From the NCBI GenBank assembly GCA_038087875.1, contig CM076001.1, forward strand, positions 1,798,001 to 1,862,000: a stretch of DNA of 64,000 nt. Reading direction: 5' to 3'. Within the stretch, counting starts at the first letter, position 1, and each line of letters starts with the position of its first letter. The notes beneath the pieces are model-generated. The model saw only the letters and a program-made list of their open reading frames with translations, was not told the origin of the DNA and did no database searches. Shown piece by piece: positions 21,067 through 59,024 of this stretch. The position numbers and the translations under genes are program-made. Source of the stretch: Malacoraja senta. Lineage: Eukaryota.

Positions 21067-21977
21067 CTATTGTTTGAATCGATTACAAATTACCTTCAAG
21101 GGACATTTGACCAGATTCTTCAACTGTTCTCTGAATTTAGTCTGTGTACCCGCATAGATGCACGTGTTGGTGCATGAACTGAGAAGTTCCATCATGTATC
21201 CGCTTTCTTGGAGTATAAACATTGGGTTGGTGGAATTGGAATTGTTCGCATAATTTTTGATTGAAAATTGCACCATAACAAAATTCACAACATTAGTAAA
21301 TCGCAAGAGCAGGAAACTGCCCGAAATGGCGAATAGTATAATGATGGACTTTCTCCTGCTCTCCATCTCTGGGTCATTCTGTTTATCTCCATGGCTCTGA
21401 GCTCGCAGCCTCTTGCGGGCTCCACTGGCCGCTAGTATGTGCCTGACCGTCAAAACATTGAGCAGCAAAATTAGCACGAACGGCACACATGGGTTTACCA
21501 TATAGAGTAGCCAGTCATATATCGTCCATGCAAGTGAAGTATAATAGACATCCTTTATGCTGCAGTACCAAGGTATATTATCCAATACATACGCAGGTTC
21601 ATATGTAAAAAAGAAAGGTATGTTTTTTACACAGTACAATGCACACACCGTTCCGATGACGACAGTCGCGATTTTCTCCGTGCAATATCGGACTTTCAGA
21701 TGTGGACAGCAAATGGCGATGAATCGATCGAAGGTGAACGCCACCGTTAACCAGGCGGAAGTGTCTTTGGAAAACCAACTGAACGCAATAACGAGGCTGC
21801 AGCCGGGAGTGGTGGATAGTAAACTAACGGGGAAATAAATAGCTCGCAGACGGCTTAATATCACCGCGGCAACGATGACTAGGAAGTCCATCACCGCCAT
21901 GGACAACAGATAGCGGCTGATACATTTTGAGAGCCCGCATCTTCCCTGTGATAGTATCACAATCGTCATCAAATTCG
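21067..21977 (-). CDS. Exon 2 of intact GPR139/142-like rhodopsin GPCR (GPCR-2, 326 aa spliced)
   Basis: Acceptor CTCTGTCCAACAG|CG, then an open frame to the stop. Contains 7TM motifs NLMTIVILS, FTFDRFIAIC and SSCTNTCIY. Confidence 0.93.
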
Positions 21978-22589
21978 CTGTTGGACAGAGGGAGACAGAT
22001 TGTGAGTAGTGATAAAACGAATCTCTCAAGCCTCGCCACCCCCTAGTTTTCGGTCAGTATATGTGTATTTTCTTTATGTATTTATTCAAGTATTTTCTAT
22101 CAGTAAACGAAGCAAATGATTTACTTAAAGTAAATAACTTAATTACATTTTAGTTAAGTATGTAAGTATTTTCTGGGGAAAGTATTCGTGTATGTGACCG
22201 TTTTCCCAATGGATTCCTGTTTGCTGACGATATCATGCAGCAACGTCAATAACTCAATGTAAACCTTTTTCCTTTGTAGGTTTCGTTCAGTTTAGACACG
22301 AATTTCTGGAATGACTCGGCGGGGCAGGCAGTGTCTCTAAAAAGATGGAATGGGTGATGTTTCGTGTCGAGACCTTTCTTCGGATTGCAAAGGCGAAACG
22401 GGTATTGATCTGATCGTTTTCAAGTGCGAATTATGTTAAACATAATACTGGGGTAGTTGCAGTGTCTCATCAAGTACATGCCACAGTTTATTTTAGAAAT
22501 ACAGCGGGGAATCAGAACCTTCGGTCCACCAAATCCGCGCCGACAAGCGATCGCCGAGCAGCAGCAATATACCACACAAATGGGACAAG

Positions 22590-33292: not shown

Positions 33293-33752
33293 ATGGGGAT
33301 CCTTTTGGTTTATACCCTGTGCCTCTGCTTATGCCGTGAGTACGGCTCACACACTTCCACACTGTCCGGTTAAGCGTAAATTTGTCCGAGGCTATTTTTG
33401 AAATGAAATTGAATCCCCATCCGAGTTCAGTTGTTCGCATCGGAGGCCCATTCATCTCTCCTAGTGTATAATTTTCAGGCTTCTTCAGGCGTTCGGTGAC
33501 GCAAAATCCGACTGAGGTGACCGGGAAGAGTGTCAGTCCCCTAGGAGCTCCTGCCGCTTTCGGATTTGTTCGCTAAGTTCATACCGTTTCAACTCTGGAC
33601 CGGTGTTCCAACAGACCCAGCCCGTGGAAGAGATGCAACGGGTCATCGTAAGGGGGCCATGTGTCGTGTCGACCAATAAAGTAGACATGGCCTTCACGCT
33701 GGAAATTCGGGACATGAGAGTTGATGACAGCGCCAGCTATCAATGACAAGCA
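33293..33752 (+). pseudogene. NAR-type (VNAR/NAR-TCR) V gene segment pseudogene
   Basis: Leader MGILLVYTLCLCLC (33293-33335)|GTGAGT, acceptor TTTTCAG| at 33478. V exon reads SVTQNPTEVTGK..QS...SC(33552)...FTLEIRDMRVDDSASYQ*. The W-position to second-Cys spacing is 47 codons, as in IgNAR V. There is a frameshift near 33530, TGA at the second Cys (33744) and no recognisable RSS. Confidence 0.82.
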
Positions 33753-34088
33753 GCAGACAGCTCGACCGCATAGGGTTTGGATACGCAGATTGGAACGGAA
33801 GGGCGCATATAACTTGCTGGATTTAAACGCTATATTATCGGAATCCGCCATCAGAATTAAATGACAGTTTTTATTAGTAACCTTGCAAGCAAGTTCAATT
33901 TCATTATAATTTTCTCGTTCTAAGTTATTTAACTGTTAAGTTTGGTTCCGACGTTCGGCATCGACGTTAGCCGTGTCTACCCATTTTTCTGAGAAACAAA
34001 ATGAGCCATTAGTTGTTTAACAATTCTGAACCACTGGAATAAATGGGTAACGTTTCCTGTTGCTTTCCGGGCAAAATGGGGTGAGGGT

Positions 34089-34127
34089 TTTTCTTGTACC
34101 GGGAAGACTGAGAGCTGGATCACTGTG
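34089..34127 (+). promoter_or_regulatory. RSS 5' of the J segment (23-nt spacer)
   Basis: Perfect CACTGTG at 34121-34127. TTTTCTTGT (6/9 match to GGTTTTTGT) ends exactly 23 nt upstream. Confidence 0.65.
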
Positions 34128-34185
34128 TTTGACTGCCATGCTTGCCATAATAATGGAGCAGGGACAAGCATGACTGTCACGGCCG
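34128..34185 (+). pseudogene. NAR-type J segment with a broken splice donor
   Basis: FDCHACHNNGAGTSMTVTA (GxGTxxTV motif) directly after the heptamer. The phase-1 end G|GAAAG has GA in place of GT. Confidence 0.75.
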
Positions 34186-34999
34186 GAAAGGATCCTAAAA
34201 GCCCTCTTTATATCCTTTGCCCAGGAATAATCAGTGTAGTCGAAAATTGCGATCGTGAGACATGAATGTCCATCTAAGTGAAGCAACCCCAATTTCTAAA
34301 TTCATCTTGCAAAATCGCCCAGGTGGAATGTTGGCTGAGGCCGACAAGTCTGGTGTGAGACCCGAGAGCGCAAACAGGTGCACTTCTAAAGCAGAAGGAT
34401 TGTGGATTTTGATGGACAATAAATGACAGACTTTCAGCCATGCACCCACCCAGCAAAAGGAAACATCGAAAAAACGGAGCACCAGAGCGTTGGGGTGGAG
34501 ACTGATGTGCGTGTTAATTAACCGAAAATGATGGGCTTACACGAGTTTCCCAGCTGGGGTTGTTTGTGGCACGGGGAAGCGATACCGACACAGAACGTTC
34601 TCAAATCCAAGAGATTGCTGATGTGAGGGGTGTCCAATGGGGAACGATTTTAGGATGGGTCCACGTGCTCTATGAGTTTGGGAATACTGGATGCAATCTC
34701 TTTATTTTTTACAATCCACAGAGCTAAGTTGATAGGGGAGACGCTGAGGTGTGATTAAGTCTGAAATCTCAGCGATAACAGCGCAGCCTCAAAGCAACTG
34801 ACAAGTGAGTGCGGGAATGATTTTAAGGAGGAGAACATGTGAACCGCAGGCAGCGAGATGCGAGGGGTCGTCATCTGAATGAAAAACATTTACTCATTGA
34901 AATGAAATTGAAACGGACAAGGACACGCTCCGTCGAATGAAGAAGATTCTGTGGGGCGTGGGGTGTGGGTTGGGGGTTGGTGGGAGGGTAGATAATAGG

Positions 35000-35815
35000 C
35001 AATGGACAACAGGTGCACGAGTAGGCCATTCGGCCCTTCGAGCCAGCACCCCCATTCAATGTGACCACGACTGATCAAGCCCAATCAGTACCCCGTTCCT
35101 GCCTTTTCCCCATATCCCCTTCTCCCCATATCTTTACGAGCTCTATCCAGCTCTGTATCCAGATAACTGGCCTCCACCGCCCTGTGAGGCAGAGAATTCC
35201 ACAGACTCCCTGGGTGAAAAAGTGTTTCCTCCGTTCTAAATTGTTCACCCTCTAAATGGCCAACCCCTTATTCTTAAACAGTGACCCCCTGGTTCTGGAC
35301 TACCCCAACATCGGGAACATGTTTCCTGCATCCAGCGTGTCCAAACCCTTAATAATCTTGTATGTTTCAATAAGATTCCCTATCATCCTTCTAAACTCCA
35401 GAGTGTACAAGCCCAGCTGCTCCATTGTCTCAGCAGATGACAGTCCCGCCATCCCGGGAATTAACATTGTAAACCTACGCTGCACTCCCGCAATAGCAAT
35501 AATGTCCTTCCTCAAATTAGGGGACCAAAACTGCACACAATACTCCAAGTGTGGTCTCACTGGGGCCCTATACAATTGCAGAATGTCCTCTTTGCTCCTA
35601 TACTCAACTTCTCTTGTTATGAAGGCCAACATGCCATTCGCCTTCTTCACTGCCTGCTGTACCTGAATGCTTATTGTCATTGACTGATGAACAAGGAACC
35701 CCAGATCCCGGTGTACTTCCCCTTTTCCCAATTTGACACCATTTAGATAATAATCTGTCTTCTTGTTTTTGCTATCAAAGTGAATAACCTCACATTTATT
35801 CACATCAATGGATGA
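35000..35815 (-). mobile_element. CR1 3' fragment
   Basis: VNKCEVIHF...LYRAPVRPHLEYCVQFWSP and UTR. Confidence 0.88.
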
Positions 35816-36466
35816 AGGCCGTTGATATATTTTCAAGTCACGGTTGCGTTTAACAGCGGGGTTGGTGTTTCCGTGCGCCCACCCCCTCGGTCCTTCCTAG
35901 ATGCGTCCCTTGAACATCTGATACATCTGAACGCTCTCTGAGGCTGTGACGCTATATTCTGCTATTCTGCATGGACTTTTGTAATCATGAACGGATGGTG
36001 CAACTAGATAGCACGCAAAACAATGTTTTCACAGCAACTCGGCACGTGACAACAGTGAGCCAACACGTAGCAATTTCTGCCTATATCAAATTTCAGACGT
36101 GAAACATACTTATTGAATAATTTGAAGAAGGAAGTAACAACCGAACGGATTGGATTCCATCTACTGTGTCTGATAGGAACAACCCACTCGGACGATAAAC
36201 TGGAAATGTCGTCAATCTCGGATGACTTTAGGCTCAACTCTTCCTGTTCAAAATTGACAACACCCTGCAAACATGATCGCCGTTTCCCCATTACTCCCAA
36301 CCTTGGCTCTCATGTGTACTGAGTTCATCGGTTGTTTAGATCTATGATTTGAATGTTTAATGTTCGGAATAACTTCGTATTTCAAAGAACAACACACTGT
36401 AAATGGTTTTCCCGGTGAGTAGCCGGGGTGACATTGTTGGATTTAATCTATGTCCCTGTACCACCA

Positions 36467-37358
36467 GGATGACACAACCCTGATTGGACTGATCCAGGAT
36501 GGGGAGGAATCTGCCTACAGACAAGAAATGACGCAGTTGGCGTCCTGCTGCTATCGCAACAACCTGGAGCTCAATGCTCTTAAGACAGTGGAATTGATTG
36601 TAGACTTTAGGAGAGCTCCCCCTCCCCTCACCCCACTCACCATCAACAAACCACCGTCACATCTGTGGAGTATTTTAAGTTCCTGGGGTGAATAATCTCC
36701 AAGGACCTTAAATTGGGGGGGGGGGCACCATCGACTCCACAGTCAAAAGGGCACAACAGAGGATGTACTTACTGCGGCAGCTGAGGAAGCACAACCTGCC
36801 ACTGCTAATTCAATACGGCCATCGTAGAGTCTGTCCTCACTTTCTCCATCGTGGTCTGGTTTGGCTCAGCCACGAAGCACGACATCCGGAGGCTGCAACG
36901 AATCGTCCGATCAGCTGAGAGGGTTATTGGCTGCAAACGTCCCTCCATTGACGAACTGTACACTACAAGGGCCGGTAAGCGAGCGGGTAAGATCCTTTCT
37001 GACCCCTCTCACCCTGGCCACCATCTCTTTATCTCACTTCCCTCTCGAAGGCGATTCCGGACTGTCAAAGCTGCCACAGCCAGACATAAAAACATTTTTT
37101 TTTCCACGAGTAATAGCGCTACTCAAAAGCCAGAATTCTGTAGCCTCCTTTTGCTCTGGTATTTTATTTAATTCACACGTTTAATTGATATTGTTTTACT
37201 ATTAGTTTTTAATGTTTTATGTGCCATTCCTAACTGTCACTGTATGTTTCATGTTGACACTTGCGGGCGGAGCACCAAGTCAAATTCCTTGTATGTGAAT
37301 GCTTGGCCAATAAACGTATTCATTCATTCATTCGTTCATTGATTCATTCATTCATTCA
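36467..37358 (+). mobile_element. Rex1/Babar-type LINE 3' fragment
   Basis: DDTTLIGLI...WFGSATKHDIRRLQRIVRSAE...DPSHPGH, with a (CATT)n tail abutting a V exon. Confidence 0.85.
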
Positions 37359-37368
37359 CATGGTAGAG

Positions 37369-37657
37369 GAGACTCTGTGCATCAGAACGCTTCTGCGGTC
37401 AGTGCAAATGAAAGGGCCCATGGCCAGATCCATTGCAATTACACAAGTATCAGCACCCAGCCAAATCTATTCTGGTACCGACAGATTTCGCGTGTCTCCA
37501 TAGAGTTTCTTCTGCACATACACAAGTATAGCGAGGTGGCGAAACATCCAGGGAACCGGTTTTCGGCACCGCTTGATCTTTCGGAGTCAACCGCCTTGCT
37601 GGCATTGACCGGAACGCAGGTAGAATACTCCGTGGTGCATTACTGCGGGTTGAGACC
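37369..37657 (+). pseudogene. TCR alpha/delta-type V exon without a recognisable leader (candidate NAR-TCR supporting V)
   Basis: DSVHQNASAV...IHCNY...LFWYRQ...NRFSA...EYSVVHYCGLR is an open frame. A candidate phase-1 acceptor AG lies at 37367-37368. The DxxxYYC motif is degenerate. Confidence 0.85.
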
Positions 37658-37696
37658 AACGGAGGCACGTGGTTTGGCTGTCCCTGCACAAAAACA
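37658..37696 (+). promoter_or_regulatory. Degenerate 23-RSS
   Basis: AACGGAG (essential CAC lost), 23-nt spacer, ACAAAAACA. Confidence 0.7.
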
Positions 37697-38789
37697 ACCG
37701 GCGGGGGGCACTGCTGAGCAACCTATGGAGTAGGACGTGAGGATAGAGTCTCCCGCAGATTTCGATTAAAACTGTTATTCATCGGCTCTTTTTTGTTAAT
37801 GATTTTGAGGAAAGATATTCCAGTGGATTTTGTGCTGGCTACTTGATGTTTAAGTCGACTTATTATGGCTACTAAAAGCACCAGAGCTCGTGGTGCGGCT
37901 CAACAACAGAGGCCTGGTTCGCAGGAGGAGACCACGTCTACAGGTAACTCGACCCCGCCCCATCGGTCAAACTCGCCGAAGGCAGGACCGCAAGTTGTCG
38001 ACGCGGACGTCTTGAAGCTAGAATTACTAACATCTTTGAGACGGGATATTGCAGATATTTTTAAAACCGAACTACGAGCAGCATTGGGTGATGATTTGTC
38101 CACAATCAGAGTTGCCCTTCAAAGCGTGAAAACACAACTCGCGAACGATAAGTTTGTTACGCACACTGAGTTGGCCATACTCCAAGGTAATGTGGGGATA
38201 ATGGAGGAGTCGCTTTCTGCCTGTACGGACGCGGTTGCTGAGCTGAAGATTCAGATCAAGCGTCTAACTGATGAGTTTTTTTTAACTTGGACATAAAAAT
38301 GTGAGGACCTAGAATCCAGCTCGCCGCAACAACATAAGAATAGTGGGGGTTCCTGAGGAGACAGTCGTCAATTTCATTGCTATCGCCACCCTGCTTAAGG
38401 ACGCGTTCAAGTTGGACAAAGAGCCGCTGCTGGAACGGACGCACAGATCCACACAGCCGAAACCACGACCCGGTGAGCGACCTCGACCCATCATTTCCAG
38501 GTTCCATTACTACAACGACTGTGTAAATATTTTACGCCATGCGGGATAGGTTCGACAGATCGATACAGGACATATGAAGATCTCATTTTTCCCCGACCAC
38601 ACTGCTAAAGTGGCCCCGGCCGAGGCAGCCTTCAACGAGGTCAGAAGACAGCTGCGTGGCGTGAAGGGGGTGCGCTCCCGTCTTTTCTACCCGGCCTAAC
38701 TCCGGATCAGCTACCAAGGTGTGGAGAAAGACTTTGACTCAGCGGAGGATGCCAACGCTCACGTCAACAAGATAAATATTAACATAGAA

Positions 38790-39075
38790 AGTAGGTGCAG
38801 GAAGAAGCCATTCAGCCCTTCGAGCCAGCACCGCGTGGATGTACTCGTGGAAACAAATGTTATTATGTCTGGCTGTGGCAGCTTTGACAGTCCGGAATCG
38901 CCTTCCAGAGGGAAGTGAGATAAAGAGATGGTGCCAGGGTGAGGGGGGGTCAGAGAGGATCTTTCCCGCTCGCTTCCTGGACCTTGCAGTGTACAGTTCG
39001 TCAGTGGGAGGAAGGTTGCAGCCAATAACCTTCTCAGCTGATCGCACGATTCAGCTGCAGCCTCCGGATGTCACA
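38790..39075 (-). mobile_element. Rex1/Babar fragment plus CR1 UTR stub inside the L1
   Basis: RSAEKVIGCNLPPTDELY...SGRRFRTVKAATARH. Confidence 0.75.
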
Positions 39076-40199
39076 TAATATTGTGTGATGTTGTATAATA
39101 TGTTGCAATAATGTTATGCATCCATGCCTTTCGTTTACATTTAAATACTTGTTCACATTTGATGTGTGTTTACATTTAGACACTTGTTTACTCCTGTTCA
39201 ACTTACATTAGTTCATCTTCTTTGCAATTTTCCTTTTATACGCAGGGGGGATTTAACTTGTTTAAATTGTTGTGTGACAATACCTTATTATGCACTAATA
39301 TAAGGACCTCAAAATATATTGCGGTATATTGGTGTTTATATATTTTTGAAGTGGTCTTTTCATGTACATCTTTTTAGTCTACATGAGGTAATATTTCATT
39401 AAACCGATATGGGATATTCTTATTATTAGTTGTGCCTTTTATTACACATTTAGAGGTCTGTGGGAGTTATTTCTTAGGGTTGGCTTAGTTTATTCTCCGA
39501 GTTGTTGCCACGGTTATGAGGCAACACTAGTTTTCTCGTTTCTTACACTGGAGTCTCCCTTTTGGAGACTTTTCTTGGTGTGTGTGTGGGTGCTTGTGTA
39601 TGGGGGTTTGTTTATGTGTGGGCGTGGGGGTGGGGCAGACATCCTGGCTTTCTTCGGATCCATTTGCTTTCTTCATTTACATATAAATGTGTTCTGCTAA
39701 TTTGAATCCCAGCAGTCTTGGTCCTGGCACACCTATTCGTTTTCCCATTTGGAACATACGTGGTATGGCGAATCCTATTAAAAGATCCAGGGTTTTCAGT
39801 CACCTGAAAGGGCTTAACTCAGCCATAGTATTTTTGCAGGAGACTCACCTTAGACTTAAAGATCATCATAGGCTGTAGTCCTCTTGGATAGGTCAGGTCT
39901 GCCACTCCAAATTTAATTCTAAAGCACGAGGGAATTCTATTTTAAATAATAAATTAATTCAATTTTTATCTACTGATGTTATTGCTGATAAAAATTGTCG
40001 ATATCTTATAGTTACGTCCATTAATGCAAACAAAGGTGTTGTTAGTAAATGTCTATGCACCTAACTTTGATGATGCTGAATTCTCTAATAGATTACTTAG
40101 TAATATACCTCATTTAAATACCCATTTGTTAATTTTTGGAGGTGATCTGAATTGCATGTTCGACCCAAAGCTAGATCGTTCTAGTCCCCGCACGTTATC

Positions 40200-41238
40200 T
40201 AGCAATGTTACAAAATTTTGAGATTTAAAAAATAAAGTCTGCAATTTATCCCATCAGATAAAGCATAAAAAGAAGTTTAATTTGACACTGAATTCACTTT
40301 CATACCTTCAGTATTAAAAAAGTTATGGCCATTATCATACTCAGAAATTAGCATCTAGTTCCCTATTGCTTTTCCATTGACTTAACACAAAAGCTGTGAT
40401 CGAGGACAGTTAAAAGCCCATAACTTTCTTAAAAATTATGGTAACTGAAAGAAATTTTCAGGTATTATAGATTGAAGCATTCTGAAACAAATATGAAACA
40501 ATCTTACTTCGAAGACATGAAAGTAAAGCATATAATTAGTTAGGTACCTAATTGTAGCTAATTACAAAATTCAATTACTAGATCTAAACATCTATCAATT
40601 TCTTAAGAATAGATTAACATTTTTAAATAGCCTAAGTGTCCAAATAACATTCACACAATAATTCACAATATAACATAATTTTTAAATCTAATTTTCATGA
40701 ATTTACAGGCCAAATGGAAGGAATTGAATGTTTAATACCTGTAAATTAATGGGGATTTAATTCATCTTGCGAGTGAGGATTACTGGAACGCGATCTTTTG
40801 GAACGTTCATTTGCGGTGAATTTAACCCCGTATTGGCATGAAAAATACTGCCGTTAATTCGGGGAATAAAATCACCGTGTCGCATGACAAAATGTGAATT
40901 AAAGGCTTCTTAAGAAGCACTTTTATACATTTAAAGAAAGCACTTTTGTTTACCTGTCCATTGTGTGAAATCCGTCCCCGTTATTGGCGTTGACGCTTCA
41001 GGAGCTGCTTTTAAAATGACTCTAGCGCTGACATTGACGATTTAATTTTAAAAAAAAATTCACAAATCGCCGGTAGGAACGATTTTGTCAGCGAAGTTTT
41101 GTACTCCAACAAAATATTTCCAGGACAAGGGAGAAACCCGCGTTTTAACCCCGCCCCCCCCTTAAAGGCGCCAAAATCGCGCACACGGCCAGTGGCAGAA
41201 TTACAGCGCGACTGAAGGTAAGTTTTGTAACATACCTA
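40200..41238. mobile_element. Non-autonomous TIR DNA transposon (hAT-like) inside L1 ORF2
   Basis: TIRs TAGCAATGTTACAAAATT / AAGTTTTGTAACATACCTA. Flanks CGTTATC / CTTTATC. L1 coding resumes on both sides. Confidence 0.7.
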
Positions 41239-41668
41239 CTTTATCCCAATCAGCTATGTCTAAACCTTGTTCTGATTTTATGACCCAGAGTGGTATGGTT
41301 GACCCTTGGAGACTTCGTAATCCCTCACCCAAAAAGTTATCTTTCTTTTCTCAGGTTCATCAATCATATTCAAGAATAGATTATTTCTTTATAGATAATA
41401 GTCACAACTCATGTGTTGTTTCCTCGGATTATTCAAATATTCTAATATCTGATCATGCACCATTATTGCTGTGTTATCCATACAGAAATATACCCCCCCC
41501 CCCTTTGGAGTTTCAACTCATTGTTGTTGGCTGATAAAACATGTTGTGAATTTGTTACATACTCAACTGATGAGTGTTCTTCTTTAACCAGAGTTAAACT
41601 ACATCTTTTTCATTGATTTGGGAGTCGCTGAAAGCTTTTTCTAACAGGGCAGATTATTTCATATTCCT

Positions 41669-42526
41669 CGGGTATGGCTGCCCAACCTGCAACTGTCCGT
41701 CCTTTCATCTTAAAAAAAAAAAATTTAGTACGTTAAAAAGTTTCGTTTTGGAGATCTAATCTTGTTTTATGTGGGGAAGACTGCATTTCTCAGTCCCTAC
41801 CTGGTCGGAGATGCGGTATTCCTCCGAGCCGTATCTTCGACCTCTCCCCGCGGCGTACCTACGGGACTGGAGCGGCGTCTCCTGCCGGGAACGGCCGGCC
41901 AGAATTTCAGCTTCGGCGGCGGCGCAGCGCTGAAGGACCATTGCGGAACGGGCGATGCCTTACCCGGGTCGCCGTATGGTAAGCTCCGGAGTGCTGAGAC
42001 CGCCGACTCCAACATCGCGGAGCTGCGGAGTCTGCGGAGCTTCCAGTTGCGGCGGCGCTGGATTTGAACACCTTGGAGCCTGGAATCTTTCGCCAGATCG
42101 CCAGTGTCGGAGCTCCGACCAGCGCGGCCTATGGACCTCGGGAGCCGCTGTCTCGGGCAGCAAGCGGCCGTTCCAGACACTCCAAACCGCTGAAGAGTGT
42201 TCTCCCGACGTCGGAGTTCCATCTTCCGGCGAGAGGGCCTGAAAAATCGGGCCGCCCTTGCGGCGACTGCGGAGGCCTCAAATAGGCCCCGAGTACGGGT
42301 TGAACAAGAGGAAAAGGACTGGACTTTGATGCCTTCCCTCACAGTGGGAACTATTGTGGGGGGGATGCTTTTATGTTTTATGTTCAATTCTTCTTTAATA
42401 TGGTGTCTTACTTTCATGGTGTGCTGCAAATGGCAACTCAAATTTCACTACCCCAGAAATGGTGTATGTGACAATAAATGTCCTTTGTCCTTTGTCCTTT
42501 GTCCTTTGTCCTTGTCCTATTCTAAT
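41669..42526 (+). mobile_element. GC-rich non-coding retroposon with (TGTCCTT)n tail inside the L1
   Basis: Interrupts L1 ORF2 at TATTC. Homologous to 24150-24905. Confidence 0.65.
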
Positions 42527-43371
42527 TTTAAAAAACGCAATACCAGGCTTGCTGAGCTTACATCTGCTATTAATAGCCTCGATCAAGAAAGTCCATCCGA
42601 TCCTTCTCCAGAACTATTTAAGAAGCGTCTTAATCTTCAGGCGGAGTTTGATCTTATTTCATCGAGAAGTGCTGAGCGATTGTTGTTACAAATTCGTGCT
42701 ACTTATTATGAACATGGTGATAAAGCAAACCGATTACTAGCACACCAAATTAAAACGTCAGTTCACCTCACGTCTTATACCTCAAATTAATAATGTTTCT
42801 AACACGACTGATACGGATCCTGCGGCAATTAATGCCACATTTAAATCATTTTATTCTTCCCTATACAAATCAGAATTCCCTGCTGATTCCACCGAAATGA
42901 ATCAGTTCCTCGCCAATCTTGAGAATCCTACCATTGATTCTGACCGTACAAAAAAATTGTATGCTCCACTTTCCCGTGAAGAGCTACGTTTTGCAATTAC
43001 AGCAATGCAGTCTAATAAAGGCCCAGGTCCTGATGGATTTCCAATAGAGTTTCTAAAGACATTTATTGATAAATTGGCACCTCTACTTTTGTTGATGTTC
43101 AATGAATCTTTGAAAAATGGCTTGTTACCTCCCACACTGACAGAAGCTTCGATAGTTCTTCTTTTAAAGAAAGATAAATACCTCACTTCCCGTGGTTCTT
43201 ATAGACCTCTGTCTATGCTGAATGCTGATGAAAAGGTTTTGGCCAAAATCATTGCTTTCCGTCTAGAGAGGGTTTTGTCTAATATTATTTCTGAGGAACA
43301 GAATTGCTTTATTAAGGGTCGCCATTTATTTTTCAACACTCGTACACTTTTAAATATTATTCATTCAACAC

Positions 43372-43560
43372 ATTCAAGATACAAGGTACAAGATACATTT
43401 ATTTGTCACATGTACCAATTGGTACAGTGAAATGTGTGGTCACCATACAGCCATACGACTAATAAAGAGCACAGAACACGATGGTCTTTAACACACACAT
43501 CCCCACACAGCGGGATCAAAGTATTCCACTGTGAGAGAAGGCTCCAAAATTCTCATAATT
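43372..43560 (-). mobile_element. Short 3' fragment of the same retroposon superfamily inside the L1 RT
   Basis: CCTTCTCTCACAGTGGAA motif and an (ATCTTGT)-like tail. Confidence 0.55.
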
Positions 43561-45705
43561 TACCTGAGATTGTAATCTAATTAGATGCTGTGAAGGCATT
43601 CAATAGCGTTGAGTGGTGGTACCTATTCGCGGTGTTGAAGACATTTGGTTTTGGAGATAAATGTATCAGTTGGGTAAGATTCCTGTATGCATCGTCACAA
43701 GCTAATGTTCAAACAAATGATATTCGTTCTGAATACTTTGCACTAGAACGTGGGACACGTCAGGGCTGCCCTTTATCTCCATCTCTCTTCGCTTTGGCTA
43801 TTGAACCACAGGCCATTTCTTTAAGGTCCTCCACTTCCTTTAAAGGTGTTATTCGCAATCTAATGTCGTTTATCTCTGTATGCGGATGATTTGTTGCTGT
43901 ATGGAACTGATCCTGCATCTTGTCTTCCTGGTATTCTATCAATTAAGGATATTTTCGTTCTTTTTCAGGATATAAACTAATCCTTCAAAAGAGCGAATGT
44001 TACCCCATTAACGCAGCAGGTTTGCAACTTCAGGAAGCTGATTTACCATTTATAATCTCTCGTTCTGGATTCAAGTATCTTCGCATCAATGTGACGCGTA
44101 CATTCTCAGGCCTTTTGTCTGACAACTTTACCCTGCTCATGACTAAAGTGAAATCTGATTTTCAGAGATGGAATAAGCTGCCTCTCTCTTTAATTGGGAA
44201 GATTACTGTTGTTAAAATGAATGTTTTGCCTAAATGTATTTATTTGTTTCAATAAATTCCCTTATTCTTACCAAAACATATCTTTGACTCATTAGACAAA
44301 ATGATTAGCCTTTTATTTGGGGCGCGAAGCCCCCGAGGGTCCGTAAATCATTAATCCAACGAGGTAAGTTCAGTGGAGGTCTCGCTTTACCGAACTTTCA
44401 ATTCTACTACTGGGCTACTTACATTCATAAAATTCGTTGTTGGGTTGATTTTCCATATTAAGCTTGGTGCGAACTGGAAGCCCGCTCTTGCCCTCCTTCA
44501 TCTTCTATATCTGCTCTTATATATTCCTCTCTTCCAACCAAGATGTCATTGTTTATCAAAAATCCTGTTGTGCTTAATATTTTAAAGATTTGGTATCAAT
44601 TCAGGAAACATTTCAAATTTGTAGCTGCGTCTCCTTTAGGTCCAGTATGTAACAATCACCTGTTTCCTCGATCACATGTGTATTCCGTTTTTTTCGGTAT
44701 GGCATAACAAAGGTATACATTGTTTTCTTGATCTGTTTTCAGGTGGTATTTTTAACAGCTTTAACAATTTATCATCATTTTGTTGATTACCAGCAAATGA
44801 TTTTTTTAGATACTTCCAAGTTAGACACTTTGTTTCTAAATATTTTCTAAATTTCCCTCTTCACCTCCACGACACATGTGGGATAGATTGCTTATTTAAA
44901 GTTATACACAGGGTCCATTTTCCCAAATCAAGACTGTTTGGGATTTATCCAGAGGTGGAGGATAAATGTGATAGATGTTCGGGCCCACACTGTCATCTGA
45001 GCCATATGTTTTTCCTTTGTCCACGATTACATAATTTTTGGTCGAGCTACTTTATTATAATGTCTAACGTAATGGAAATACCTCTACAGCCCTGTCCATT
45101 GATTGCCATATTTAGGGCCCTGGGTGAGTCAGGTCGATTAAACTCTGTGCAATTTTTTAAAATAAATTTTACATCTTTGATAGCCAGACGTCGCCTACTC
45201 CTAGTGAAAAATCCGTAACCCACCCTCTGTGTCACAGTGGCCCAAAGATGTAATGTTTTTCCTTAAACTTGAGAAAATTAAATATACATTGAGGGGATGC
45301 ACTGATAATGTTTCTCACAAATGGCAACCTTTATTTTTTTATCATACTTTACAGACTTGCAGGTTCTGCCAGACGAAGGGCTGGTTTGTTAAATGTTGCT
45401 ATGTGTAGGTGCACTCTTCACTCTTAATTAGCCATGGTGGGATGGGTGGGGTGTGTGACTGATGATATGGTTGCATTATATATAATAATTATTTTAAATA
45501 ATTTAAAAATATATATATTTCTATTTATATGATGTTTCTGTTTATTTTTGTATTTTTCTTTTGTGTGTTATTTGAGTGTTTCTTATTAACATGCCTTTTT
45601 TTCATTTTTGTGTTGATTTATTTAAAATTAACAATTACAAAATTAAAAAAAAACACAAAAACAACCGGCGCTGTCAGAGCCGGCAGCAGCTGTAAACAGG
45701 AGAAG

Positions 45706-45744
45706 GGTTTTTGTGTGAGGACCGCCGCAGTTTCTCTCAGTGTG
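45706..45744 (-). promoter_or_regulatory. 23-RSS of the minus-strand V
   Basis: CACACTG (45744-45738), 23-nt spacer, perfect ACAAAAACC (45714-45706). Confidence 0.93.
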
Positions 45745-46179
45745 CGGATCTGTCGCGCAATAATACACCGCCGTGTCGGCGGGTTCGATGTTCTCGATGA
45801 TGAACTGGCTGCGCTTGTCAGCAGGTGAAAAATATAATTTAAAACGACCATTGATCTCTCTCCCAACCGCTCTTCGCCTGATTACCCTTTCTAGCCCTTT
45901 TCCACTTTTCTGTCTGTACCACTGCATGGAATAAATGTATTTCTCATAGGTGCAATTGATCCGCGTCGACTCTCCATTCCGGACAATAATCGCGGGCGGA
46001 ATCTGCGATATTCCTTCCAAGAGACAACGACCTACGGAAATACATAAAATGCGGTCGCGTAAGATTGCACAAGCGCAAATAAATATACGACCGTGTATTA
46101 TTTGGGAACTGCTCTGGCACTTACGTATCAGCAACGCGAGGAAGATGGAAAATAGATTCTGCTGCATTGGCGAAAACAT
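45745..46179 (-). CDS. Intact TCR alpha/delta-type V gene segment (leader 46179-46125, intron, V exon 46031-45745)
   Basis: Leader MFSPMQQNLFSIFLALLI, then a GTAAGT...CCGTAG phase-1 intron of 93 nt. V exon has ESTRINC, MQWYRQKSGKGLE, GRF and DTAVYYCATD, with no stops. Confidence 0.92.
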
Positions 46180-48232: not shown

Positions 48233-51200
48233 ATGTTAAACAACCTTGCTCGACCTGATAGCGCACTTGGATCAGAGTATGTCGAACTCCCTTTGTCTGA
48301 TTCGAGTTCCTCCCAGGGGGAGAACAGCATATTTTCGGTGTTGGATGCACCTGCTCTGATAACGAACCCCTCGGTTCACGTTACTCTCAACGGCTCGACC
48401 TTCACTGCCAAGCTCGACACGGGGGCTGCGACCAATGTTATGTCAATAGGCCTCTTCAAGAAGATAAGGTCTGGTGAGAAAATCACTCCCGCTCACTCCC
48501 TTTTGCATGCATATGGGGGAGCCGAGCTCGTTCCAGTGGGGAGCGCTACCCTGCACTGCAAGGTTCTGCATGCCGCTCAGCCCCTCACTTTTTAGATACT
48601 GGATACCAACGGCATCACCCTTTTGGGTGCCCAGGCGTGCCAGGACCTCGGCTTGGTCTCTTTCCACCGCGATAATAATAATAATAATAATGGATGGGAT
48701 TTATATAGCGCGTTTCTAATACTCAAGGCGCTTTACATCGCATTATTCATTCACTCCTCAGTCACACTCGGTGGTGGTGGTGAGCTACTTCTGTAGCCAC
48801 AGCTGCCCTGGGGCAGACTGACGGAAGCGTGGCTGCTAATCTGCGCCTACGGCCCCTCCGACCACCACCAATCACTCACACACATTCACACACATTCACA
48901 CGCAGGCAAAGGTGGGTGAAGTGTCTTTCCCATGGACACAACGACAGTATGCACTCCAAGCGGGATTCGAACCGGCTACCTTCCGGTTGCCAGCCGAACA
49001 CTTAGCCCATTGCGCCATCCACCAGGTGCGGACCCTTATGGACCCCCTGCACGAATACCCTGACCGTTTTGATGAAAAGCTGGGCAAGGTGCTACAAGAT
49101 CGTTGTCGACCGCGGTGTTGAACCCGTGTTCCGTCCACCACACCGCGTCTCCTTCGCCATGAAGGACAATGTGGAGTCAACGCTGCTCGACATGGTTACC
49201 ATGGGCATCCTGAAGGAGGTGAGCGAACCCACCCGGTGGGTCTCAACCATGGTTGTTGCGGCGAAAAAGGACAAGAGTGAAATTCGCATTTGCATCAACC
49301 CCAAAGACCTGAACCTTGCCATCAGACGCCCTCATTACCCCATGCGAACAGTGGAGGACGTCGCTGCGCAGGTTGGCCCGGCCACTGTCTTCTCGGTTCT
49401 CGATGCCAAGAGCTCCTTCTGGCAGATACCGCTGGAAGACTACTTGACTACCTTCGGCACACCTTTCGGCAGGTACCGATTCCTCCGCATGCCATTCGGG
49501 ATCAACTCTGCCAGCGAGGTATTCCAGCGGACGATGGAACAGCTGTTCATCGGTCTGCCGTGTGCCATCATCGTTGACGACATCCTGGTCTACGGTAAAG
49601 ACGTTGCTGAGCACGATCTCCACCTCCGTCGAGTCCTGAACCGGGCCCGCGAAATCAACCTCAAACTAAACCCAAAGAAGTGCCGGTTCCGCGTCCCGGA
49701 GGTCACCTACGTGGGCCACGTTTTTACCGCATCGGGGCTAAAGCCCGACCCGCAGAAGACAGCTGCGGTCTCCGATATGTCTTCGCCCACCGACGTGGCC
49801 AGCCTACAACGTTTCCTGGGCATGGTTAATTACTTGGGGAAGTTTATCCCCGACATCAGCGAGCTGAGCGCGCCCCTGAGGGAGTTGATCAACAAGGACA
49901 CTGCCTGGGTTTGATTCCCGCATCACCAGACAGCTTTTGACGTCCTGAAGTCCAGGCTGGCCAGTGACCCCACTCTCCAATTCTTCGATCTGCACCGCGC
50001 CATTGTTCTTACCTGCGACGCCTCCAAGTTCGGTCTTGGTGCTGCCTGTCTGCAGCTCCGCGATGGCCTGCAGCTGCCTGTTTCCTACGCGTCCCGCACC
50101 ATGACTCCTGCCGAGCAGCGCTATGCTCAGATAGAGAAGGAGCTGCTTGCTGTGGTGTTTGCCTGCTCCAAGTTCAAGGACTATATCCTGGGCAACAGTT
50201 TCACGATCGAAACCGACCATCAGCCGCTGGTCTCTATCCTCAATAAGCCCATCCACGTTGCCGCTTCCCGGTTGCAGCGCATGATGCTACAACTCCAACG
50301 CTTTACGTTTAAAATTGTGTATTGCAAGCGCAAGGACATGTTCGTGGCAGACACGCTGTCCCGCGCGCCACTAACGTCCACTGATCGCCACCCATATGAA
50401 TCATCCGACCTGATGGTGCTTAACGTCAACATCGTGCCTTCCCAGCAAATGCAGTCCCTGATCAGCAACACTGCCAAGGACCCTGCCCTGCAGCAGCTTG
50501 CCGACGTCATCAGGCAGGGTTGGCCAGAGTGTCGTTCATCCTTACCGCCTGGAGTCGTGCCCTACTTCCTGGTCCGTGACGAGCTCGTGCTGCACGACGG
50601 CGTGGTCGTGAAGGGACACAAGGTGGTTGTGTCTGCTGCCCCGCGGGAACAATACTTTCATACCGCCCACGGCGGTCATCCTGGGGCCGATGCCACCCTG
50701 TCTCAGGCCCAGAGTTTGTTCTACTGGCCCGGCATGGCCCAAGACATCCGGGAGAGGGTCACCGCTTGCTCTGTCTGCAATAGCCTCGCTCCCCATCAGC
50801 AACGGCAGCCGCTTCTGCAACAGCCTGCCCCCGAGCTGCCCTGGATGACCGTCGCCGCTGACATTTTTGAGTGGCGTGGAAAGCATTTCCTGGTTCTTGT
50901 GGGCTCATACTACAGCTGGTTCGAGGTGGACCAGCTGCACTCCCTAACCTCTTCGGCCGTTATCGGCAAGCTGCGCCGCCACTTCGGAACCCATGGCACC
51001 CCGGCAAGTCTTCAAGCGGACAACGGCGGCCAGTTCTCGAGCGCAGAATTTCGGAGTTTCGCTGCCAGTTGGAACTTCGGACACTACACCAACAGCCCGG
51101 AGTACCCACAAAGCAACGGATTGGCGGAGCGCGCTGTCCGCAGTGCTAAGGACTTGCTGGAACATTGTAGACTGTCCCATTCTGATTTTTACTTGGCCCT

Positions 51201-51855
51201 CCTCAATCTTCGCAACATTTGCCGCGACACTGCCTTGGGCTCTCCAGCTCAACGGCTGATGTCTCGCACTACGAGACGTCCGATCCCGGTGACCCAGCGT
51301 TCCCTCGTTCACTCTGTCCTCCGTCCCGCTGCCGTCCAGGAGCGCATTGCCCTCAAACAAGAAATCCAACGGCGCTCCCACGACAAATCTTGTCGTCCTC
51401 TCCCGCATCCGCTCCCAGGCCAAGTCGTCCGAATGCAATCCCCCTCCGGTCACCCCAGGCTTGCCATCGTCGTCGGTACTGCTGGATCGCCGCGGTCCTA
51501 CCTTGTCGACCATGACGGTACCATTTACCGCCGGTCCCGGCAGCATCTGCGGCTTGTTAACGAGCCACCACCGCCGCCTGCGGATCCTCCCCCCCCCCTC
51601 ATTGTCGACAACACTGCCTGCCCCTCCGGCCATTCCTCCCTCGCCTGCCCGTCTTCCCGCTACTGCTCCTGCTTCCCCTGCACCTTCTCCGTTTTCTCGT
51701 TCTCCTCCCGGTTCCCCGGTCTCTCCCCCGCGCCGGCTCCTGCTCATGCTCCGCCTGCAGAAGGGGGGGGGATGGCGAAATGCGTACCCGGTACGCGCAG
51801 GTGCTCAGCCCGCCTATCCGTTATCGTGAATTTGTTTAACTGTTTGCTCACCTGA
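48233..51855 (+). pseudogene. Gypsy pol (PR, RT, RNase H, integrase), interrupted
   Basis: KLDTGA, LDAKSSFWQ, IVDDILV, CDASKFGLG, EKELLAV, H..H...C..C, ADNG and SNGLAE motifs. Interrupted by a SINE insertion, a frameshift near 49090 and TGA at 49912. Confidence 0.92.
48674..49017 (-). mobile_element. tRNA-derived SINE with (ATT)n tail nested in Gypsy pol
   Basis: A box TGGCGCAATGG (49017-49007), B box GGTTCGAATCCC (48973-48962) and an L2-like tail GTAAAGCGCCTTGAG...GCGCTATATAAAT. Confidence 0.88.
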
Positions 51856-57728: not shown

Positions 57729-58044
57729 TCCTTCGGTTTCAACCAGCATCTGCAATTCCTTCCTGCACATTATTGTCAATATTGTTCGTTTTGAAATTCC
57801 ACGCCTTAATTTTTGTTTATGCCTTATTTATTTCTCCCTGTTATTTAAGTGTCATTTTAACGTTTAGATTGATCTGCAATGATCTGCGAAATGTAACAAA
57901 CGTCCGTCGTTAAACTGATGTGTTTCAATCGCGGTGTCAACAGTGAAGGATACGCATGCATAGTCGCCTTCCAAACACGTTGATGTAACAGGCAGATGAT
58001 TTTTTTCGTTATGGATTTTCTATCTCTCCATCTCTCTCACACAG

Positions 58045-59024
58045 CGAACGCGTTGACCATTGTGATCCTGGCGCAAGGACGATGCGGCCTCGCGAAGTGT
58101 ATCACCCGCTACCTTGTGTTCATGGCGGTGACGGATCTCCTCGTTATTATCACCGCAGTGATACTGAGTCGGCTACGTGCTATTTATTTCCCTGTTAGTT
58201 TTTTGTCCACCATTCCCGCCTGCAAACTTATTATTCTCCTCAGCTGGGCATCCAAGGACGCGTCTGTTTGGTTGACCGTCGCCTTCACCTTCGATCGATT
58301 CATAGCCATTTGCTGTCACCGACAGAAGCTCAGATTTTGCACGGAGAAAACCGCGGCTGTCGTTATTGGAAGTGTCTGTGCGGTGGGTTGTTTTAAAAAT
58401 GTCCCTTCTTACTTTATATACGAGCCAGTGTACGTGGTAGATAACGTGCCCTGGTTCTGCACGATAAACGAAATGTACTATTCTTCCATTGCATGGAGGG
58501 TTTATGACTGGCTGCACCGGATGTTAAACCCATGTGTCCCGTTCCTTCTCATTTTTCTACTCAATGTTCTGACGGTCAGATACATCCTAACGGCGAATAA
58601 AGCCCGCAGGAGGCTCCGGGCCCAAAGCAATGGGGACCGACAGAATGACACGGAGATGGAGAACAGGAGAAAGTCTATCATTTTACTCATGGCGATATCG
58701 GGTAGTTTTCTCCTGTTGCGATTGACGTATGTCGTGAATTTTCTATTTGTGCAACTGACCAGCAATAAGTATGCCAGCGGCTCCAATTCCGCTGACCCAA
58801 AGTTTATCCTACAGGAAAGCGGATACATGCTGGAGCTTCTCAGTTCTTGTACCAACTCGTGCATTTACGCGGGGACGCAGATTAAGTTCAGAAGACAGTT
58901 GAAGGGCGCTGTTAAATTCCCATTCAAACTAATTAAAGCATGGTTCAAAACTTACGCATTACCGATAGTTTCCGTCTTATATTCCACGACTGAAAATTAT
59001 AAAGTTGATATGATTTTGAAATAG
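58045..59024 (+). CDS. Exon 2 of intact GPR139/142-like rhodopsin GPCR (GPCR-3, 349 aa spliced)
   Basis: Acceptor CTCTCTCACACAG|CG, then an open 7TM frame with NALTIVILA, FTFDRFIAIC and SSCTNSCIY. Confidence 0.93.

Follow-up and report, generated by a model that had tools for sequence, protein, structure and literature searches.

A probable fossil NAR-TCR unit in the T-cell receptor alpha/delta V region of a skate

INTRODUCTION

A doubly rearranging antigen receptor of cartilaginous fish, NAR-TCR (also written NAR-TcR or NARTCR), is said to have been described by Criscitiello, Saltis and Flajnik in 2006. Here we analyze a probable dead member of this family in a stretch of 64,000 nucleotides from the skate Malacoraja senta (GenBank assembly GCA_038087875.1, contig CM076001.1, positions 1,798,001 to 1,862,000 of the forward strand). 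This whole stretch is called the window, and all positions below are counted from its first nucleotide.

All lineages of cartilaginous fish are known to have the NAR-TCR family (PMC1845163, PMC12227049). Its N-terminal variable (V) domain has a normal leader, carries a Cys in the a-b loop and lacks the Trp of the WYRK motif (PMC1845163, summarising Criscitiello 2006). The supporting T-cell receptor (TCR) delta V has no leader exon, and a Cys in complementarity-determining region 1 (CDR1) is common to these supporting delta Vs in nurse shark and elephant shark (PMC1845163). TCR mu of marsupials and monotremes is likewise a chain of three domains with two Vs, in which a supporting V carries an antibody-like N-terminal V that is unpaired (PMC3457774).

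RESULTS

Order of the parts in the window

The window is repeat-rich, and three V-set exons were found in its 64 kb: V1 at 33.5 kb on the plus strand, V2 at 37.4 kb on the plus strand, and an intact V at 45.7-46.2 kb on the minus strand. The order on the plus strand was a leader and a NAR-type V (V1), a joining (J) segment with its recombination signal sequence (RSS) 340 bp on, and an open TCR alpha/delta-type V (V2) 3.2 kb further (Table 1). The original prediction had matched this arrangement to the doubly rearranging NAR-TCR. The match was supported by the order of the parts, by the position of V2, which lies on the same strand and has a 23-type RSS of its own, and by two hallmarks of V1, the a-b-loop Cys and the lack of a canonical Trp. 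We conclude that the interval 33293-37696 is probably a fossil NAR-TCR unit, situated in the TCR alpha/delta V region of the skate.

The NAR-type V and its leader

The leader of V1 had a hydrophobicity of 2.58 and a phase-1 donor, C/GTGAGT, at 33335/33336 that matched at 6/9 positions. The intact V on the minus strand of the window has a comparable leader. The phase-1 intron that follows is 143 bp long and ends in the acceptor ttttcag, and the V exon includes five leader residues. V1 therefore has a split leader of its own, as does the NAR-type V of NAR-TCR.

The V exon was read in two frames. It begins as RFFR-RSVTQNPTEVT and continues in the next frame as REECQSPRSSC...LEIRDMRVDDSASYQ-stop, with the end reading DDSASYQ-stop. 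At the break (33520-33522), the codons ACC (33520) and CGG (33522) overlap by one base, at 33522. This indicated the loss of a single base. The codon of the second Cys (Cys104) is replaced by TGA at 33744-33746, and a further TAG is present at 33771. The a-b-loop Cys (TGT) is at 33531, Cys22 at 33552, and a Val occupies the position of Trp41 at 33603.

A 70-amino-acid piece of V1 was compared with 177,635 PDB sequences by phmmer. The 14 best matches were VNAR domains (best E 0.003), and no antibody or TCR V was among the 18 matches obtained. When the six-frame translation of the window was searched with an elephant-shark NAR-TCR model (P0005), the sole match was at 33522-33740 (E 3e-4). With an X at the break, V1 was 29-31% identical to four NAR-TCR V copies of elephant shark in an alignment of 83 columns, and the only indel was one of two residues in CDR1.

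The alignment placed both marks of a NAR-TCR V in V1. The a-b-loop Cys is in a motif, REEC, seven residues before Cys22, and the identical motif is found in two of the elephant-shark sequences (P0151 and P0152). The position of the WYRK Trp, 47 codons ahead of the second-Cys codon, is taken by Val in V1 and by Phe in elephant shark.

The J segment

The RSS of the J segment has a perfect heptamer, with a spacer of 26 bp to the nonamer, or of 23 bp to a weaker nonamer matching at 6/9 positions. The coding part consists of 20 codons and ends in GAGTSMTVTA. This motif, of the form GxGTxxTVT, occurs once in the six frames of the window. For comparison, an elephant-shark NAR-TCR model (P0153) ends in GSGSKVTVT. 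A PDB search with the 20-amino-acid J was uninformative.

In NAR-TCR, the J ends at a GT donor whose phase fits the exon of the supporting V. Here, the phase-1 donor site reads G/GA, not G/GT, and about 50 bases separate it from the next GT.

The 5' part of J is long and Cys-rich. It contains nine extra codons with two Cys, FDCHACHNN (34128-34154), directly behind the heptamer of the 23-type signal, and no diversity (D) segment was found between V1 and J. One possible reading is a NAR-TCR unit without a D, preserved here as a fossil, in whose J a D and a J are fused in the germline. We regard this idea as rather doubtful. If it is true, germline joining in the NAR-TCR family would predate the death of this cassette.

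The TCR-type V and its recombination signal

The best single-domain PDB matches of V2 were TCR alpha V domains (E 3e-7). Its Pfam V-set score was 25.1 bits, against a curated cut-off of 26. In a library of 1.84 billion proteins, its nearest single-domain relatives were shark TCR alpha/delta Vs at 41-45% identity, among them an annotated TCR alpha chain of zebra shark (P0024) and two sequences of bamboo shark (P0029 and P0058). A word-indexed protein search with V2 gave no match, and the same kind of search with the elephant-shark NAR-TCR regions returned elephant-shark proteins only.

The signal of V2 retains its 23-bp spacer and a nonamer matching at 8/9 positions. At the corresponding place, the translations of the V2-homologue loci of bamboo shark read P-T-E, from which we infer a CACAGAG heptamer in that species. 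By this comparison, the heptamer of V2 has lost its essential first C. The two bamboo-shark loci (L001 and L002) contain V2-like Vs and no NAR V, and no leader exon was seen by eye at either. No paralogue of V2 was found at 80% likeness in the DNA contigs of run X3 (see below), and V2 is single-copy at that level.

All the parts that had been named in the original prediction, a VNAR-like V exon with a leader, an RSS and a GAGTSMTV J about 340 bp after it, and a TCR-type V, were present in that order. Its distance of 47 codons from the W position to the second Cys held as well, the residue at the W position being Val. The lesions that it had listed (a frameshift in V, a Cys-to-stop change, GT to GA at the J donor, and CAC to AAC in the V2 heptamer) were all seen in the sequence, the frameshift as a 1-nt loss and the heptamer as AACGGAG. 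The flanking LINE (long interspersed element) insertions that it had also listed were present as well. Two LINE-derived repeats lie between J and V2, and an L1 lies behind V2.

The J-V2 interval and the restored acceptor

Of the 3.2 kb that separate J from V2, these two repeats take up 1.7 kb. The word depth of the first, a high-copy repeat, was 10^5-10^6, versus about 30 for unique DNA. The second is a 5'-truncated LINE that extends to the boundary of V2. At its 5' junction, the loose ends of contigs before 36467 gave the consensus of the element, and the word depth within the LINE was high. At its 3' junction, contigs of at least three other loci shared the tail up to 37363-37368 and then continued into unrelated flanks. 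The bases ...cacatggtagag just before V2 are therefore most likely LINE sequence.

It follows that the acceptor AG originally predicted at 37370/37371 is at the junction, at or inside the 3' end of the LINE, and not in the ancestral intron. When the flanks were joined without the LINE, the sequence read ...tttaatctatgtccctgtaccaccag/GA GAC TCT, in which a pyrimidine tract and CAG precede one split codon and the mature Asp. The restored phase-1 acceptor would be ccctgtaccaccag/GA GAC, and the final G of J together with GA would encode Gly in frame. The predicted junction G-DSVHQ, in phase with J, would thus be retained.

The window was scanned for ATG-initiated hydrophobic exons with phase-1 donors, and the true leaders of both V1 and the minus-strand V were among the exons obtained. 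A signal-peptide exon for V2, which the original prediction had held to be incompatible with a supporting role, was sought in the 3.2 kb between J and V2, and no credible one was found there. Poor donors, low hydrophobicity or joins that created a stop led to the rejection of candidates at 36273, 36360, 34672 and 34937. The best of them, at 36273 (MIAVSPLLPTLALM), has a 3/9 donor, and its T joined to GA makes TGA. Pfam gave nothing useful on the open reading frames (ORFs) between J and V2. A splice-donor-like sequence, CCG/GTGAGT (8/9), was also observed at 36412-36421, 52 bp before the LINE junction, with no plausible exon ahead of it.

A conventional TCR alpha/delta V has a leader exon about 100-200 bp upstream and leader residues in its V exon. 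Both are seen in the minus-strand V, whose V exon includes seven leader residues, and neither in V2. The restored V2 exon starts only one split codon before the mature Asp. This start, together with the poor leader candidates, suggested that V2 is leaderless, to the extent that the LINE boundary, uncertain by a few bases, is correctly placed.

Table 1. Positions of the fossil unit, of the repeats around it and of other features in the window
Feature	Position	Strand	Description
V1 leader exon	33293..33335	+	ATG at 33293; 14 hydrophobic codons, MGILLVYTLCLCLC plus 1 nt, then donor GTGAGT
V1, NAR-TCR-type V exon, pseudogene	33479..33746	+	From similarity searches, alignment and translation
J recombination signal	34086..34127	+	Nonamer GGTTTTTCT at 34086-34094; perfect heptamer CACTGTG at 34121-34127
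J coding segment	34128..34187	+	FDCHACHNNGAGTSMTVTA plus G (34128-34185), then GA (34186-34187) instead of GT donor
High-copy LINE-derived repeat	34989..35808	-	Inside the J-V2 interval; at least 10 copies in the window, 73-81% identity
5'-truncated LINE	36467..~37367	+	Starts in reverse transcriptase motif (F)ADDT; ends in (TTCA)n tail plus ~10 nt; at V2 acceptor/exon boundary
V2, TCR alpha/delta-type V, putative supporting V	37371..37657	+	Open, 96 codons; Cys23 37434, Trp41 37473, Cys104 37644
V2 recombination signal	37658..37696	+	Heptamer AACGGAG, 23-bp spacer, nonamer ACAAAAACA
Target-site duplication of L1	37687..37703 (left), 45654-45670 (right)	+	17 bp, perfect, CACAAAAACAACCGGCG; left copy overlaps V2 nonamer
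L1-like insertion	37704-45653		~7.95 kb; poly-A end
TCR alpha-type V, intact-looking	45706-46179	-	Leader 46179-46125; V exon ~46031-45745; signal CACACTG-23-ACAAAAACC
GPCR (G protein-coupled receptor) gene	21070-22029	-	Rhodopsin family; open
GPCR gene	57996-59021	+	Rhodopsin family; open
Retroelement pol	49069-51852	+	GC-rich; reverse transcriptase, RNase H and integrase domains; LTR (long terminal repeat)-retrotransposon type

The unit in two further samples

Two further samples, runs X3 and X4, were available as Logan contigs with a DNA-like, even unique depth of about 30 and about 5, respectively. The contigs of both span V1, J and the unique parts of the interval with point differences only. 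Neither had an indel at 33520-33522 or a change at 33744-33746. The lesions of the unit were found in the DNA of the further samples as well.

V2 was covered by contigs of run X3, in which its allele had three differences, all non-synonymous (L47I, P60S and S87C). In run X4 (about 5x), the contig depth was zero over 37386-37707 (the whole V2 exon), and the flanks were covered. The gap may stem from low coverage, from a divergent allele or from a deletion that is polymorphic.

Neighboring features

The minus-strand V looks intact. A reading of it as a VH-like TAILV was rejected, as its best single-domain matches were TCR alpha Vs. It converges tail-to-tail with V2, and the two nonamers were 42 bp apart before the L1 insertion, with two 23-type signals face to face. 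The target-site duplication of the L1 includes the nonamer of the V2 signal, and this A-rich nonamer therefore served as the LINE target.

The two GPCR genes share 70% identity at the protein level and 76% at the DNA level. They are mirror-oriented, and each points away from the V promoter closest to it (that of V1 or of the minus-strand V) at a distance of about 11-12 kb. The retroelement pol completes the features in Table 1.

DISCUSSION

Several results weigh against the identification of this interval as a fossil NAR-TCR unit. The CDR1 of V2 (NYTSISTQPNLFWY) has no Cys (QPNLFWY versus SDYCLYWY in the elephant-shark supporting V that follows the NAR V in P0005), and V2 thus lacks a mark of the supporting Vs of NAR-TCR. 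V2 is open over 96 codons, versus three disruptions in V1, which would fit a separate, later death of V2. By a rough estimate, a frame open for 96 codons would be about 5% likely at the disruption rate of V1. V1 itself scored 18 bits against elephant-shark NAR-TCR V, no better than the 21 bits against IgNAR V, so that it is the signature positions and the context that place it in the TCR branch. Neither an RSS of V1 nor a D stood out from the weak RSS-like matches that form the background, at about 8 in every 500 bp. The LINE boundaries are placed to within a few bases, and it is from them that we infer the restored acceptor. Finally, no transcript of the unit was found: the only RNA-labelled runs, X1 and X2, carry the repeats alone and not V1-J or V2, and no RNA run matched in a second search with V1-J alone.

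The alternative that survives best divides the unit. V1 and J would be the remnant of a dead NAR-TCR, and V2 an ordinary neighboring alpha/delta V that was never spliced to J and whose leader was lost or obscured by the LINEs. It would account for the missing CDR1 Cys and for an open V2 beside a badly decayed V1. It would also agree with the nearest relatives of V2 being shark TCR alpha/delta Vs, of which P0024 carries a leader, and with the weak leader-like ORF at 36273, which precedes the LINE junction by about 190 bp. However, the poor donor of that ORF and the TGA that it forms with the restored acceptor argue against its use as a leader. The restored V2 exon also begins unlike those of V1 and the minus-strand V, and V2 is on the same strand as J. 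We consider this alternative unlikely, though it deserves to be kept in mind.

The CDR1 of V2 might be explained in three ways. The Cys may have been lost after the death of the unit, with the frame kept open by luck; the supporting Vs of skates may differ in this respect; or V2 may be an ordinary V downstream. The supporting role of V2 was part of the original prediction. Its strand, its RSS, the lack of a credible leader and the restored phase speak for it, and the absence of the CDR1 Cys speaks against it. This role is likely but not proven.

The second alternative is that V1 and J are the remnant of an IgNAR heavy-chain cluster (V-D-D-D-J-C) without its constant (C) exons. The best solved-structure matches of V1 are indeed IgNAR V domains, and the J motif GAGT..TV, which we take to resemble IgNAR J, would also count for it. 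On the other hand, V1 combines an a-b-loop Cys with the lack of the canonical Trp, features that have both been described in NAR-TCR V but not in IgNAR V. Downstream, the V-set exon that comes next belongs to a TCR V. In the 64-kb window, V-set and P0024 constant-region queries gave no match beyond the three V exons, a search that was not specifically directed at IgNAR C exons. An IgNAR origin is thus very improbable.

That V1 and J resemble their counterparts by chance, as random matches in junk DNA, is hardly credible: the single E-values are modest (0.003 and 3e-4) and Pfam V-set was not significant on the V1 piece, but the same family was reached by two independent searches, V1 aligns column-for-column with its signature residues and has a leader and an intron in phase, and a perfect heptamer and a J motif lie at the expected distance.

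As a fossil NAR-TCR unit, the locus would have worked in the mode established for the NAR-TCR family. The leader and NAR-type V would have been rearranged to their own J. The resulting V(D)J exon would have been spliced from the phase-1 donor of J onto the leaderless TCR delta V, which would have been rearranged separately to a delta D and J. The product would have been a delta chain of three domains whose antibody-like tip was unpaired.

The unit is dead. V1 has a 1-nt deletion, a stop at the second Cys and no recognizable RSS, and the J donor reads GA. Further causes of death are the LINE between the V2 exon and its acceptor, the V2 heptamer without its first C, and the L1 behind the nonamer.

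The unit represents one casualty in the birth-and-death history of NAR-TCR genes in a skate. The routes to death were point lesions in a V and a splice donor, a LINE on the acceptor of the supporting V, and an L1 in an A-rich RSS nonamer. For annotation, V2 is to be labelled a supporting V that is probably non-functional, and not a delta/alpha V that could be used. The unit is a non-working member of an already known family, and the knowledge of the receptor is unchanged by it.

Like NAR-TCR, the unit has a leader-bearing NAR V in which the a-b loop carries a Cys and the canonical Trp is missing, an RSS-flanked J close behind it, and a delta/alpha-type V on the same strand with a 23-type RSS and no recognizable leader. 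It differs from NAR-TCR in that all its functional elements are broken and in that V2 lacks the CDR1 Cys thought to bond with the Cys of the NAR V. A D and the RSS of V1 are not recognizable, and the J has a long Cys-rich 5' extension.

IgNAR V (PDB 8ht3, 2ywy and 1ver) is like V1 in being its best structure match, with a gapless alignment from CDR1 to the second Cys, and in being a short V without a CDR2 bulge. It is unlike V1 in that it keeps the WYRK Trp, has Gly at the place of the a-b-loop Cys of V1, and is followed by Ds, a J and IgNAR C exons. TCR mu is like the unit in its way of working. It uses VH-related Vs, and the likeness is regarded as convergent rather than due to descent.

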